The notes under the pieces are model-generated. The model ran no database searches and was not told where the DNA came from. It saw nothing but the letters and a program-made list of their open reading frames with translations. A DNA stretch of 64,000 nt from Tubulanus polymorphus. Taxonomy: Eukaryota > Animalia > Nemertea. The stretch lies in contig NC_134030.1 of the NCBI RefSeq assembly GCF_964204645.1, positions 1,781,355 to 1,845,354 on the forward strand, read 5' to 3'. Below, piece by piece: positions 3,195-63,691 of this stretch; position 1 is the stretch's first letter; the number at the start of each line of letters is the position of its first letter. A program made the translations under genes and the position numbers.

Positions 3195-4561
3195 TTATGT
3201 AGCTTCAGTTTTAGTCGTTCTTGTGTAGATGATCTGAGCTCGGTGTTTATCGACCAATCGGATTAAACCTACAAAAACACAAACAATCTGGGTGAAACAG
3301 CGAGAAATATTTAATTTTCAAACAACTGCTTTTGATTCATTTGGTAAAATGAAATCTGCATAAGAAAGAAAATAAGTACTAAATGCATCATCATAACAAG
3401 TTGAAGGAAATATTTCAGACCTAACTAATCGTCCTCAATACCCATTCGCTATACACTCGTAGCCCAAAATTTCCCCTTAATTCATTTTCACTTATTTGTC
3501 TTTGATAATGAGCGACTATTTTTAGGATCATCACTGGTGCCAGTTGATCCCAGTTATGGTAAGTCCACGCTGATCCTAGGGAAACTAGCCTCTAGGGAAA
3601 CTAGCTGTGGCATGGCGGATAAGGTGTTTGACTCACAACTGAGAGGTTGAGGGTTCGAATCCTAGTGAAACCATGCATTCAGGCAGGACACATATCAGTA
3701 CTTGTCGACTCACTGATTTAACAACAAGTCCGTACCTGGCAAAAATCTTCAGCATGTTGAAGTTGGCCAGTAATAGGTAGAACTAGAACTAGAACTGAAG
3801 AGGGGCTCAAAATTCGCAATTTCTTCCAGAAAATTCTCAACAATTCTCAAAGATTAGTATACAGGATTTTGAGATGAGACCGGAAGCAATCTAAGGATTC
3901 ACAAGTTTTTTGAGGCTGGGAGCAAGTACGACTTGATATACTTATAATAACCTTTAGATTGTAGTTCTTTCAGAGCAGCTCTCGCTAATGATCCGCGAAT
4001 CTTCAATCTTTCAGAGACGACAGACGGAGTTATCAATTTATAACTGGGAACTTCCTTGTACAGTTTATCGTAGGTACCCTTATCGAAGAGAACCAAGTTG
4101 TTCAACTTATCGCGAACTTTTCCCTTAGACCACTTCTACAAAATCAAAAAGGGAGACAATGTTTTAGGAACAAGCTATAGTTAGAACAAGGCAAAAACCT
4201 TATCAGTTGCAATGATCGAACTAACCTTCTTCTTAGCCTTTCCGCCGGACCCTTCCTTCTTCTTGGCCGGTACTTTCGAGGTCTTACCCCCTTTCGGGTC
4301 CTTGCCTTTCGGTGGCTAAAAAACAGACACGAGAAATAACTAAAAGTTCAATAAAGCGATAGCAGGTGGCGCCACCGTCTCAGTCGAAAAACACCTCGAT
4401 TAAACCCTTAAATTCACCAGGAAATCAGGGCTGTATCGGGTTTACATCACGGATAGTTAATAGAATATATACAGAAGTATTGTCTAAACTTCATTTAGCG
4501 ATAATTAAACAGTTATTTTAGGAATAAAGCACTAATGAACGTGTTAATTTCGACCTACCAT
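3195..4561 (-). CDS. RPS25: 40S ribosomal protein S25 (eS25)
   Basis: Exons 4559-4561 (ATG only), 4226-4315, 3952-4135, 3195-3268. MPPKGKD...[57 protein letters not shown]...HRAQIIYTR. Confidence 0.98.
3595..3796 (+). mobile_element. tRNA-derived SINE in RPS25 intron 3
   Basis: A box TGGCATGGCGG (3608-3618), B box GGTTCGAATCC (3652-3662), non-tRNA body, (AGAACT)3 tail; no complete cloverleaf. Confidence 0.65.
4375..4452 (-). ncRNA. Candidate intronic box C/D snoRNA
   Basis: Sense to RPS25 in intron 1: C-like GTGATGT (4450-4444), D' CTGA (4428-4425), D CTGA (4383-4380), complementary ends, ~78 nt, ends ~60 nt from the 3' splice site. Confidence 0.5.
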
Positions 4562-4608: not shown

Positions 4609-5492
4609 CTGGATAGATGATAAAACACAAACTCGCATATGAACCGATGATGTATTGAGTTAACGTAATTAATCCATTTAACTAAAACAATTTGAGAATA
4701 TTTCTGAAAAGTGAATCAGAAGATCTATGAAAATTGAGAAATGTTTTGTTTTAGGAAATATTTACAGGTGTGACCATCGTGAAGATTTTCTCTACAACAA
4801 ACACTTGTTTGAAGCAATTGATTAACTGTTAATTGTAATTAATCAATTCGATACTAATAAAAATCAACGATTATTATAATCTTAATCATGACGTAATCTT
4901 TTTTCTATTCGAAAGTAAGAAAATATCTAGCGGTGCTGCCATCGTGCGGATATTGTCTACATTAAGTGACGTTTCCATCCAATCAGAACCTGGTGCTGGT
5001 GCTGCTGCTGCTGCAGCTACAGGGAATGGATGAGGAAGGGTGAAAATACTGAACCATACACCCTTTACCACTCTGAAGCAATCTATGCACCCTTTACCAC
5101 TGGATCGGGTAGGTTCAACTGACGCACGGCAAAACTTGTGGCGCCGGTTCAACTAACTGAGTCAGGCTCCAAAAAAAGTCCAACTAAAAAAAACCCATAA
5201 ACGAGAAAAGTAATTAACTGCACTATGTATGTTATGTTTGCTTTTAGTTTTAAAATCAAAAAAATTCCTGAGCATTTAAATTTAAGAAATAACCTGATAA
5301 CATGCATTACTTGTAGTGCATTTGGCTTTTCTTCAGCTTATTTTGATAAAAAAAAGAATTTAGGGCCTGAATACTGATTTTCTTTTTTGTGAATCTTGAT
5401 TTGAAATTATAATCTCAATGTGACGATCTTCACTTTAATTTCAGAATAAATAGAGAGCGGAGAAAATAGTAAAAGGAGGAAGAGATTCGAGA

Positions 5493-59490: not shown

Positions 59491-60093
59491 TTTTACCAAG
59501 TTAATCTGCAAATAAAATACATTGTCATTGGATCCATTTGATTTGTATTAGATTGAAGCGATTTTCTGTTTATTTCTCATGTTTTTAGATTGATTTCGGC
59601 GGAAATTTCAATCGCCAGAATAAATCTTAGACTTGTTTTTATTTTGTTTACCCGAAATATCGAATATCTTGCAGAAGAAGCCGCTTATTTCACGCAAATA
59701 TGCACAATATCGAAACGCACTATTTTATTTATTACCGCCACTAGAAAGTTACCGACCGCAAATTTGAGAATAGCGGTGGTTACATTTCCAATACAATAAT
59801 AAATTACTTTATTGATGCATGGAATAACTTTAACTTCTGCGGTACACCTTTAGAACATAGGAAACATGTGGATTTCTGGGATATATATATATATATAATT
59901 TGAATTGATCAAAAAATGTCCATGAAAATTATATCCCGAAAAATCTACACGGCATCGCACCGGACATAGATTCCGATGCCCGCTTTGAAAGCGAATAGTG
60001 GCAAGTGAGTGTTGAATGTCAGAATTCAATTCAATATAGTATGTTGAATAGTATAATGCGATTGAATTGAATTGAGGATTATTGAAGTAGATA

Positions 60094-63000
60094 ATGAATA
60101 GCGTTCGTGTTTATTTCCTCGCATTTGTTTCACTTGTAGCAATTTTATCGTAAGTATTTCGTTATTTCATTTCTTTGATCTCACACATCCCGTATAGTAG
60201 TAGTAGTTCACTCACGACAACACAATCTCCAACCAAGTCCAAAGTCCAACAAACAAAGTCCAAGCCATGTTTGTTCTGCTGAAAAGACTACCAATAGAGT
60301 ACCAAGATAAAAACCCACTACTTACTACTATCCACAAAAAAAGAATTTAAAAACAAGAAATTTATCAATTCGAACAATCTAAAATATATAAAATACACGA
60401 CGTTTCCATCTCATCCTAGAGATCATCGTCAAGTTACTTACACCTTATTATCCGTTCACCACATCACATTTGAGTGTGGTTATTGTTCTAGTATACTAGT
60501 ATTACTAATAAGTTCTAACAGCATGTCGGTCTCGGATGAAAAGTGGCGCCGAATGTACTACATAGCCTAAATACGAACTGTCTGTTATAGATAAATAGAT
60601 AGTGAAAGATTAGATTAAGACAATTGATATCTGATATTATTTGCCAGTACCGGTAATTGTTGTTCTGATGCAAAGTCAAATATTTTTTAGTCCCCTCCCT
60701 TAGTCCCTGAGCTAGGTCACACCCACACCTTTCAAATCAAGCAAAGTTGAAATTGTAGGCGTCAAAAAGACCAGGTTTTATGTCAGTTTAGTTGAATGTT
60801 GTATGATTGTTGTTTATTGTTATTTTCAGTGTTGTTTTTGCTACTAGTCAATTAGATGCAGCTGAGGTATATTTATTATATATATATATATATCAGTATA
60901 TTACCTAATCCTCAAATAGAATCCGATCATCTCAAAAACGTTGATTTCTATTTTAGCATGTTCGAGTAAAACGCTCGGGTGGAGGAGCGCCGTCTGGTGG
61001 CGATGAATCGAACGATAAAACGGAAGATGAAACGATCGGGATTCAGTTAAACGATACGGAATGGATTTCTGGGAAACAGTGGTACCTGGTACGTATTATA
61101 GCCACTAGGTGGAGCTAGTGCGAGGTCTAGGAAATTTTGGGCTATTGGGTATTGAGCAATGTAACCTTATGGGACAATGTTTGTAGCTTCTTATCATCTT
61201 GTATGTGATTATTTAAAATTTTGGTGCTAAACTATAGGTGGTGTTAGTGTGGCAAGTATCCATTAGATGGAGCTAGTGTGAAGTAGGTCTCATTCTTTCA
61301 ATCTTTTTGTTCGTTTCCAGGAAAAAACCAAATCGCACACGTTTCAAACTTTAAACGCGCGCGTTGCCTGGGAACAATGCGTTACGGGAAAAGGCGTAAA
61401 CGTGGCTATAGTAGCTAATTCGATTATTCAAAATAACCCTGACCTTCATAATAATTACGTAAGTTAAGATTAAACAAAATGATTGCGAACAATGAAATAG
61501 AACAATGAAGAATTGAGTAATAATTGAGTAAGAATTGAGTAATAATTGAGTAATAATTCGTGTTTCGAATGGTTTTTCAGGAAGCCAAAATTTCTTATGG
61601 TCCGTTCAATAAAACAGGATCTTCATCACTCAATATAAATCCAGCTGATAAGGCTACGCAATGCGCTGGAATCATCGCAGCTGGAGCGAATCACTTCTGC
61701 GGAGTCGGAGTAGCTTTTGATGCTAAAATTGTCGGTATGAAAACTTGATATCAGGGTAGCTCACCTGGGGCTGGTTTTACAGACTGGTGTTATCTTTAAC
61801 CCGGGGTGTCGGGGAATTTCGTAATAGAAAGCTAAAAATCAGAGAAATTTTTCGAGATTGCGCATAAAATCAAACAGTTTCTGGCTGTGTTTTACATATT
61901 TGACCGTGTTAATTGATCGGATTCTTGGCAGATCAAGTCAGGGAAAACAAAGTGCTTGTCAGGGAATAGTCACGGGAAAAGCCAGTCAATTAAAAGTGGC
62001 CTCCCGGAATAAAATCTTCATTCTTGGATCTCGCCCTTACAGGAAAAAAGTCATGAAATTGAAAGTTGATTTTCTATGAAGAGAATTTAATGGTTGTTTA
62101 ATGAAATGAAAAGAATTGAGATGTTAAATGTTTTATATTTCTTTAGGCGAACAGATGAACGATAAACCGAGTGATGTAAAACTAGCTGAAGCATTAACCG
62201 AGCACAGTAATAAAGTAGATGTTATATTGAATATACTCGAACACACGGCTATTTCACCGATTGGGCAGAAAACAATGCAGGCAATTGAAACTGATATCAA
62301 ACAGGTATCGAAACATTAATCAATTATCCTCTTCAGTGTATCATCAATTATCTTTATCAAAGACAGAGTTTCAGTGGACTGCATGATTACCAGGGAGCTG
62401 ATGACGTGCCTCGGACTGTGTTTGTCGCCGAGCCGTTTACCTCTAATTATCACGTGACCCTGACTCTGTTTGCCATTGCCTCTAATTATATATGCTATTC
62501 CGTATATTTCTAGGGTCGAAAGAGTAAGGGTACGATACTAGTGACCCCTGTTGGCGATCTCGGTACTAGTTGCTCGTTTAACGGATTTATAAATCGTCCC
62601 GAATCGATCGCCGTTTCCGCTATCAGACGTAACGGCTTTAAACTAACGGACGGCAATCACTGCTCCGCCGTCATGGCAACGGCTTATAGTAAAAATCAAC
62701 AAGATACGGATCCAATTGTAGGTTTTGGATCGGTTGAATCCAATACACGTATTTATTCTAATGTAGGTTGTGAATAATGAAATTATTTTGTTTCGTGCAA
62801 AGGTTACAGTAACAGGAAATGAAGGATGCACCGAAGACGTAGCTGGTTCGGCACCTGCTGCATCATTCGCAGCTGGAATTATTGCACTCGCTTTGGAAGC
62901 CAAGTAAGCATTGATCATTTACACTCGGAGTCCACGCCTCGGCCGGGACTGAGGATACGTCGTGGCAGTAAAACAAATTCATAGAGATGTAAATTAGATT

Positions 63001-63691
63001 TGGTTTCTTTGTCAGAGAATAATCTTATCGTCTATGATAAGATGGGAATGTTATAACGAACAACGTGGTTTTCTACAGGATATCACGGAGTACCATGGGC
63101 GGGGAGATGGAGGGGTTCTCGGCCGGATAATTTCACCATCTTTTGATGCTAAGCGAAAAAGTCGCACAATTCAAATTTTATATGATATAATTTATTAAAA
63201 CGAAACCACAACGTTTCGGCTGTTGACAGCCATCATCAGGAGGAATGATGATTATCTACAGTGTACACGGATTAGATGTTTCATTCGGCCTCTTGATGCG
63301 TTTGTGAGGACATCAAGATATATTTTCCACGCTTTATTCGTCCATAAGTACCGTTTAAGCAGTTGTGGCAGTAGGCCCAATTCGCCCCTGGGGCCAATTC
63401 CATAGTCAAGACTAAAGACAAAAAGTGGTCTGAAGTCTTGACACTGGTCTTAAGTTGGCTCTAGACCTAAGTTGGTCTTAGACTGGTCTTAAGTCTAAGC
63501 CCTCACTATGCAACCGGCCCCAGTTTCTAGTGGTGTTGTTTGTTTGTTCAACTCATGGTTTATAATTTCTGTATATTTTAGTCCTGATCTATCGTGGAGA
63601 GACGTACAGCATTTGATCGTACAAACTTCAACTTCGAAAAATGTTCGTTTTAACCCGAATGATTTCGTCAAAAATCAACAAGGAATTTCGG
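60094..63691 (+). CDS. Kexin/furin-family (S8B) proprotein convertase homolog, predicted catalytically inactive; continues past right edge
   Basis: Exons 60094-60149, 60830-60866, 60957-61088, 61321-61458, 61581-61734, 62147-62304, 62514-62717, 62803-62903, 63582-63691, frame open throughout. Signal peptide, RVKR, [51 protein letters not shown]. Confidence 0.9.
63206..63243 (-). ncRNA. Solitary minimal hammerhead-like motif
   Basis: CTGATGA-T-GGCTG-TCAA-CAGCC-GAAAC-GTT; stem I imperfect. Confidence 0.5.

Follow-up and report, generated by a model that had tools for sequence, protein, structure and literature searches.

Proprotein convertases are textbook obligate enzymes, and their prodomain is held indispensable for folding. 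In the 268-Mb genome of Tubulanus polymorphus, a stretch of 64,000 nucleotides (G000:C6:1781355-1845354, forward strand; hereafter the window) carries near its end a convertase-like gene that the NCBI has modeled as 'PCSK6-like' (P0003, 596 amino acids) and in which the whole catalytic triad is replaced. The locus raises the question of whether such a gene is a decaying relic, a hydrolase of an unusual kind, or a protein that is kept for something other than proteolysis. An earlier note made from the letters of the window had proposed a selected, secreted, non-catalytic protein of kexin fold. Our analysis indicates that P0003 is very probably an expressed and selectively maintained pseudoprotease of the kexin type, tethered to the membrane: it has the homology and the fold of the family without its catalytic residues, and its gene is transcribed and has kept its reading frame against the neutral expectation.

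The searches with the window sequence were run one exon at a time, and the NCBI record P0003 was used as the full-length protein. Exon-wise phmmer alignments to PDB chains are ungapped over each catalytic motif, and in those to furin and kexin no triad appears, since Ala, Lys and Ala occupy the positions of the catalytic Asp, His and Ser. The position of the oxyanion Asn is occupied by Asp. The four codons lie exactly where the earlier note had read them, and its reading of the four motifs, including a serine (Ser309) one residue ahead of the canonical nucleophile, agrees with the alignments (Table 1). At full length, P0003 aligns to human furin with an E value of 4e-64 and 32% identity, and it lacks the Asp-His-Ser triad, in its DDG, HGT and GTS motifs, by which an active S8B convertase is recognized.

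The functional positions of furin were numbered from this full-length alignment, and the roles of these residues in the S1, S2 and S4 pockets and in the calcium sites are those that we take them to have in furin structures. The S2 pocket is lost (D154N and D191P), and so are the S4 pocket (E236L and D264S) and the S1 pocket (Asp258 gone, D306N). The SWGP substrate strand is replaced and shortened, which bears out the previous claim that the acidic SWGPEDDG loop is missing. The Ca2 site (Asp258, Asp301, and E331N) and the Ca3 site (D174G, D179T, and D181S) are also lost, and the Ca1 site (Asp115, Asp162, and Asn208) is kept. The fold has retained its supports, as had also been noticed: the cysteines at the furin 211/360 and 303/333 disulfide positions, i.e., both pairs of the catalytic domain, plus Cys198, are in place together with core Gly and Trp residues and the conserved helix LSWRDVQHL. 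As far as can be judged from these replacements, P0003 should be proteolytically inert and its cleft should no longer hold RxKR substrates.

A census of the Asp/His/Asn/Ser sites in 245 near-full-length convertases (400-1100 amino acids) places these changes in context. The DHNS combination is found in 209 of them, and another 16 carry DHDS, the PC2 type, which Asp240 of P0003 matches, so that this residue alone would not be disqualifying for activity. Apart from N-terminally truncated rows and two EHNS proteins, the only deviants are P0003 (AKDA), its Tubulanus paralog P0001 (DTKG), and an octocoral protein (DRNS).

The gene comprises 12 exons that start with the ATG at window position 60094. 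The nine GT-AG exons without stops or frameshifts described earlier are correct for the window; the total is higher, as the gene extends 1.9 kb beyond the window end with three further exons (E10-E12, L003:4077-5889, where the window coordinate equals 60000 plus the L003 coordinate). With exon borders traced by hand, every intron begins with GT and ends with AG (22 of 22 splice dinucleotides intact), the phases are consistent, and the frame contains neither a stop nor a frameshift. P0003 is identical to the hand-made exon translations in their order, except for the six split codons in between.

The protein matches the whole Peptidase_S8 profile (PF00082, 1-288) with 73.9 bits and P_proprotein (PF01483) with 40 bits. 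Single exons are too short for Pfam; exon 5 alone scored, just under the cut-off for PF00082. Reading on downstream, as had been advised, we found that the exons beyond the window encode the P domain, a transmembrane helix and a tail of 29 residues. Only two segments of P0003 are hydrophobic, the signal peptide at residues 2-27 and the transmembrane stretch at 536-567, and its ectodomain has four N-glycosylation sequons. Because of the C-terminal helix, the protein is predicted to be a type I membrane glycoprotein with a transmembrane anchor and a short tail on the cytoplasmic side, and the soluble secreted product that had been assumed from the window has to be abandoned. An AlphaFold model based on 41 homologs reached a predicted local distance difference test (pLDDT) score of 81.3 and a predicted template modeling (pTM) score of 0.79, and low confidence was confined to the linker 26-58, the loop 138-140, the juxtamembrane stretch and the tail. 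Superposed on furin crystal structures, this model gave target-normalised TM values of 0.87-0.89 with a root-mean-square deviation of 2.2-2.5 Å. The look-alikes of P0003 in the ESM Atlas were generic convertase clusters only.

Transcription was analyzed by mapping four runs onto L003:50-5950. A contig of 1451 nt from a second sample (run X4, contig 17) has the introns removed and fits the predicted exons, with borders within 1-2 bases of the hand-derived ones; the pieces listed for it are given in Table 1. E8 and E9 are not among these pieces, and a gap of 210 nt (contig 896-1107) fits E8 plus E9, which amount to 211 nt. The first 108 nt of the contig fit E1 and E2 plus a leader of 15 nt; the contig starts about 15 nt before the ATG, the 5' untranslated region being very short or incomplete. 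A separate RNA joint, 5009->5574 (GT..AG, cut +2), corresponds to the E11/E12 junction. Exons 7 and 8 occur only once in the genome, which identifies the spliced sequence as RNA and rules out a retrocopy.

The second sample is the same as the reference at the four replaced catalytic and oxyanion codons, and a contig of sample S2 over L003:2778-3106 has a Ser-position codon identical to the reference. At least six coding differences from the reference were found, four synonymous and two replacement among those listed (Table 1), and none of the listed ones falls on a catalytic codon. In two stretches of intron the samples differ by about 3-4%, with indels. If 76% of the sites are replacement sites, two replacements among the six listed differences correspond to a one-sided binomial probability of about 0.03, a hand calculation that carries little weight.

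Relatives were sought with a profile of exon 7 and the paralogous exon against 1.84 billion representatives, and then by a word search with P0003; a word search with exon 7 alone, whose length window left out full-length relatives, gave no candidates. The sole relative closer than the ordinary convertases is a protein of Lineus longissimus (P0151, also 'PCSK6-like', 667 amino acids) with 41% identity. This protein has the prodomain (PF16470), VVDDG, DHGTKVAG, GGNGG and the Ser nucleophile, and it retains the SWGP strand, Asp301, Asp306 and Glu331. The two genes have eight intron positions in common, and the juxtamembrane and transmembrane segments are nearly identical, with the common motif DFTPLYIF. 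P0003 is sister to P0151 with a Shimodaira-Hasegawa approximate likelihood ratio test (SH-aLRT) support of 97 in a tree of 44 proteins and 98 in a tree of 17, and the end branch leading to the Tubulanus protein is longer than that of Lineus by a factor of 1.6-2.1 (2.16 vs 1.02 in the 44-protein tree). Searching the Tubulanus genome with P0151 returned only the eight known convertase loci, and therefore there is no intact Tubulanus co-ortholog of P0151. Because the Lineus ortholog still has its prodomain and a full triad, the loss of both is specific to the Tubulanus lineage. The neighbors of the Lineus gene encode MFS, DC-STAMP, PX/Vps5 and ATP-synt_C proteins.

The prodomain has disappeared cleanly. 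PF16470 is absent from P0003 in Pfam and from its locus in a genome-wide scan, in which prodomain exons adjoin six other convertase genes and none was found at the P0001 locus on contig C4. Searched by tblastn with proteins of Lineus, Lingula and coral and with chicken furin, the 10 kb upstream, every intron and the 6 kb downstream gave matches at the annotated exons only and no trace of a prodomain. Exon 3 starts at the point homologous to the start of the Lineus exon for amino acids 81-132, and its RVKR aligns with the end of the Lineus prodomain (...IASR). From this homology and the lack of any trace it follows that the exon or exons of the prodomain body were lost, the signal peptide and the phase being retained. 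Both dead paralogs have an RxKR motif after the signal peptide, RVKR in P0003 and RSKR in P0001.

The second dead convertase, P0001 (G000:C4, about 6843000-6852900, forward strand; 603 amino acids; 'endoprotease bli-like' at NCBI), has kept the Asp and replaced His by Thr, the oxyanion Asn by Lys and Ser by Gly. It has no prodomain, its RSKR comes shortly after the signal peptide, and it has a transmembrane anchor. Its nearest relatives are bivalve proteins and P0014 of Lingula anatina, which has a prodomain and DHNS. Forcing P0003 and P0001 to be monophyletic costs 33.6 log-likelihood units, with a p value of 0.046 in the approximately unbiased (AU) test (17 proteins, LG+G4), a marginal rejection. 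The tree can be read as independent losses because long-branch attraction would favor joining the dead paralogs, and there is moderate support for the view that the catalytic losses of P0003 and P0001 were independent. The other six Tubulanus convertase genes have canonical motifs.

Is P0003 then merely a pseudogene, transcribed and unprocessed, whose function was lost so recently that the open frame and the splicing are leftovers? All its catalytic residues are gone, its end branch has roughly double the length of that of the Lineus ortholog, the searches of other species yielded no close ortholog, and run X5 has no contig on the gene. Against this stands the frame, which is open in spite of heavy divergence. 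Among 97 alignment positions that are at least 90% invariant in 224 triad-bearing convertases, P0003 has changed 41 and Lineus P0151 has changed 15. At most of the 41 columns P0151 retains the consensus residue, and these changes therefore arose on the Tubulanus branch. Neutral drift was simulated as point mutation of the 590 whole codons; each exon was treated separately, and the transition/transversion rate ratio was set to 2. At 37% residue divergence the mean number of stops was 10.8 and none of 3000 runs kept an open frame, and at 10% divergence the frame was open in 4.5% of the runs; indels and splice-site loss make the survival of the frame under neutrality still less likely than simulated. 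Yet all 590 codons of P0003 are free of stops and its 22 splice dinucleotides are intact. This result shows that selection protected the frame through most of the dismantling of the active site. The clean removal of the prodomain, the retained disulfide cysteines, core Gly and Trp residues, P domain and transmembrane helix, and the correctly spliced transcript also stand against decay. The one escape, that the active-site changes came before the loss of function, is implausible because the residues concerned are invariant in every active member. We therefore consider a pseudogene very improbable. The proposal of a selected non-catalytic protein holds on the intact 12-exon frame, the spliced RNA and the neutral simulation, and downstream frameshifts without expression, which would have spoken for a plain pseudogene, are not seen: E10-E12 are intact and spliced RNA is present.

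Two further explanations would leave the gene functional in another way. P0003 might still be a hydrolase through non-canonical residues, e.g., a Ser309/Lys145 dyad. Lys145 takes the place of the His, Ser309 directly precedes the position of the canonical nucleophile, and Ser/Lys dyads occur in other peptidase clans. Nevertheless, Ser at the Thr367 position is ancestral in the protostome sub-branch (KSS in Lineus, QSS in one Lingula protein, ESG in P0001), and Ser309 is thus not a compensating novelty. The oxyanion Asn has given way to Asp with its negative charge, the SWGP strand, on which the substrate backbone is held, is deleted, the acids of S1, S2 and S4 are gone, and in P0001 the His is replaced by Thr and the Ser by Gly, which leaves no dyad possible there; an active enzyme of this sort is hardly credible. 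Alternatively, P0003 might be a decoy or competitor, whose dead cleft traps RxKR, whose RVKR leader competes for furin, or whose ectodomain soaks up inhibitory prodomains. The RxKR motif of both dead paralogs, the six active prodomain-bearing convertase genes of the genome and a membrane anchor that would put P0003 in the same compartments are in its favor. However, the acids that bind P1, P2 and P4 (Asp154, Asp191, Glu236, Asp258, Asp264, and Asp306) are replaced and the SWGP strand is missing, and therefore the cleft should hold neither basic motifs nor the C-terminal tail of a prodomain; trapping of RxKR substrates is unlikely for the same loss of acidic pockets. Moreover, one RVKR per molecule makes a weak competitor, and the motif may be a mere relic of the prodomain junction. 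We regard a decoy as improbable.

Several points weigh against a maintained pseudoprotease. The prodomain of subtilases is usually needed for folding, and a member without it might misfold. The RNA basis consists of one assembled contig and one joint from one sample, and an older putative T. polymorphus RNA run (X5, 2015) gave nothing on the gene, which should not be taken as a sign of silence. Few polymorphisms were counted, and the counts come from the differences listed. No relative above 50% identity was found in the profile and word searches, which puts the ratio of nonsynonymous to synonymous substitution rates (dN/dS) and the date of the loss out of reach. Finally, a binding role like that of PCSK9 is an analogy and not a result.

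Taking P0003 as a maintained pseudoprotease, we propose that the signal peptide directs it into the secretory pathway and that one of the six active furin-type convertases probably cuts off the short N-terminal leader at RVKR37. The ectodomain might then act as a membrane-tethered binding module, in a PCSK9-like way, and in broad terms also like other dead protease homologs, the iRhoms and the Csp pseudoproteases of Clostridioides difficile. A convertase needs its own triad for the autocleavage of its prodomain. Deletion of the prodomain would have removed the only step that still required the protein's own catalysis, which could account for the loss of the triad as well in both dead paralogs; if the job of the protein was already binding, the triad would have had no further use after the deletion. 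The order of these events is not fixed, since bivalve proteins without a prodomain still carry the triad.

Both dead genes fall within a 99%-supported clade that also contains coral 'furin-1-like' proteins, two Lingula proteins, Mytilus and Saccostrea proteins and one labeled Nymphon. The clade stands apart from furin/PC5/6, PC1 and PC2; it contains no vertebrate protein, and no PCSK7 was found among the best hits. Its coral members keep nearly all functional features except Asp306, its Lineus and Lingula members are without Asp258 (S1), and the bivalve proteins P0267 (Mytilus galloprovincialis) and P0269 (Saccostrea) have neither prodomain, SWGP strand nor Gly366/Thr367 and have kept Asp, His, Asn and Ser. 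These bivalve proteins are possible intermediates toward non-catalytic proteins. In the same clade, the octocoral protein P0018 (Dendronephthya gigantea, XP_028408148.1) has its catalytic His replaced by Arg, and it carries a long extra C-terminal part that by eye looks like a fibrinogen-related domain. An uncharacterized kexin-like group, PCSKX, has been described from Nematostella, spiralians, sea urchin and amphioxus and as lost in vertebrates and ecdysozoans (Tao et al., bioRxiv 10.1101/802215); this preprint is silent on inactive members. The invertebrate-only clade is probably PCSKX, judged by taxon spread, since its cnidarians, brachiopod, bivalves and nemerteans and its lack of vertebrates fit that distribution.

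It is tempting, although doubtful at present, to see in this clade a natural series from an enzyme to a pure binding protein with a conserved non-proteolytic job at the membrane. Corals, fully equipped but for Asp306, might stand at its start, followed perhaps by Lineus and Lingula with the loss of Asp258 and by the bivalves with that of prodomain and strand. The two Tubulanus paralogs could conceivably have completed, independently, the change to membrane proteins without prodomain and triad. A job of this kind, such as the escort of a cargo or receptor or the regulation of active convertases, would then predate the repeated loss of catalysis and might explain it, a speculative idea. If the series were real, kexin folds could fold without an intramolecular chaperone.

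Table 1. Exons, replaced residues and sample differences of the P0003 gene. Positions are those of the window unless marked L003; RNA pieces are parts of X4 contig 17 in L003 numbering.
Feature	Position	Strand	Description
E1	60094-60149	+	ATG and hydrophobic signal peptide, amino acids 1-18 plus 2 nt; agrees with the P0003 N-terminus
E2	60830-60866	+	12 residues bridging signal peptide and exon 3; in relatives, prodomain of ~60 residues here
E3	60957-61088	+	Vestigial prodomain end RVKR, low-complexity acidic/Gly linker, catalytic-domain start QWYL; in spliced RNA contig (piece 955-1087)
RVKR (Arg34-Arg37)	60963-60974	+	Furin cleavage consensus, located where a prodomain has its primary cleavage site; read from sequence
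E4	61321-61458	+	Asp-motif exon, IVANS for ILDDG; ungapped furin alignment; RNA piece 1320-1458, 0 differences
Ala107 (GCT) at furin Asp153	61414-61416	+	Ungapped alignment; next residue Asn at Asp154
E5	61581-61734	+	His-motif exon, KATQCAG for HGTRCAG; kexin/furin alignment; RNA piece 1581-1733, 0 differences
Lys145 (AAG) at furin His194	61650-61652	+	Ungapped alignment to kexin and furin
E6	62147-62304	+	SWGPEDDG substrate-loop region remodeled and shortened; Glu236, Asp258, Asp264 lost; RNA piece 2146-2302
E7	62514-62717	+	Oxyanion exon, PVGD for ASGN; RNA piece 2512-2717
E7, furin positions			Asp301, Asp306, Glu331 lost; Cys303, Cys333 kept
Asp240 (GAT) at furin oxyanion Asn295	62556-62558	+	Ungapped alignment
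E8	62803-62903	+	Ser-motif exon, GSAPAAS for GTSASAP
Ala310 (GCA) at furin Ser368	62851-62853	+	Ungapped alignment; Ser309 at Thr367 position
E9	63582-63691	+	Catalytic-domain end, conserved helix LSWRDVQHL
E10	L003:4077-4188	+	Beyond the window end; RNA piece 4076-4188
E11	L003:4737-5011	+	P domain; RNA piece 4737-4968
E12	L003:5576-5889	+	P-domain end, transmembrane helix, tail, TAG stop
Synonymous differences (second sample)	62603, 62886, 63589; L003:5586
Replacement differences (second sample)	62647; 63592		Thr270Met; Ser331Thr

The non-coding parts of the locus hold some repeats. Intron 8 contains, at window 63385-63525, a dispersed repeat some 140 bp long, of which over 50 copies with 80-86% identity occur on many contigs, partly in tandem arrays, e.g., at G000:C2:31148878-31149583. 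In intron 10, the repeat at L003:4290-4580 reaches a read depth in the thousands with many variant joints in all three runs, and by eye it has a tRNA-derived look, like a short interspersed nuclear element (SINE). A (TA)n run lies at window 59870-59900, about 200 bp upstream of the ATG. Elsewhere in the genome, another convertase gene (G000:C6:8525449-8528849) has its His-motif exon (TRCAGE...CGVGVAY) twice in tandem, about 680 bp apart, which could be a duplicated or a mutually exclusive exon. Outside Tubulanus, P0002 (3332 amino acids, from an ENA contig of 82 kb) and P0004 (940 amino acids, JGI/NCBI) are built of several kexin-like domains in tandem; these have GTD, GTE or GSE in place of GTS and no His motif, and are thus pseudo-kexin repeats of a eukaryote.

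The gene was already known as a RefSeq model under a routine enzyme name; its dead state, the loss of the prodomain and the parallel paralog were not annotated. Pseudoproteases as a kind are well known. In a limited full-text search and in the convertase-phylogeny preprint we found no description of natural kexin-type (S8B) pseudoproteases, nor of a member that is maintained without triad and prodomain. If P0003 folds and functions, the furin fold would be reusable as a membrane-tethered binding module and the prodomain requirement could be bypassed, and a group thought to be 'functionally similar to furin' may be non-proteolytic in some spiralians. So far the case is restricted to a single species, from a phylum that has received little study; its genome offers two parallel examples, and together with the triad-bearing Lineus ortholog these make a ready comparative system.

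With the furin/kexin convertases (MEROPS S8B), P0003 has in common the fold and the succession of subtilase domain, P domain, transmembrane anchor and short tail. Active members have the triad, the oxyanion Asn, the acidic S1, S2 and S4 pockets, SWGP, the Ca2 and Ca3 ligands and the prodomain, whereas P0003 has none of them and, on its sequence, should not be the same kind of enzyme. Its sister P0151 shares introns, juxtamembrane motif and transmembrane anchor and differs in having kept prodomain and full triad. Secreted PCSK9 lowers LDL receptors without need for catalytic activity (PMC13276728) and is thus a convertase-family protein acting by binding, as proposed for P0003. However, PCSK9 belongs to the proteinase K subfamily, keeps its triad for autocleavage, stays bound to its prodomain and is secreted, whereas P0003 is kexin-type, has neither triad nor prodomain and is predicted to be membrane-anchored. 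CspA and CspC of Clostridioides difficile are subtilisin-family proteins whose triad is not intact and which have signaling or receptor roles (PMC7200643; PMC6636752); they are bacterial, soluble S8A proteins without a P domain, and only the subtilase fold links them to P0003. The iRhoms, membrane-bound dead protease homologs, are conserved as regulators of the trafficking and activity of an active protease; their intramembrane rhomboid fold is unrelated, and they serve only as a model for how a dead, tethered homolog can matter.

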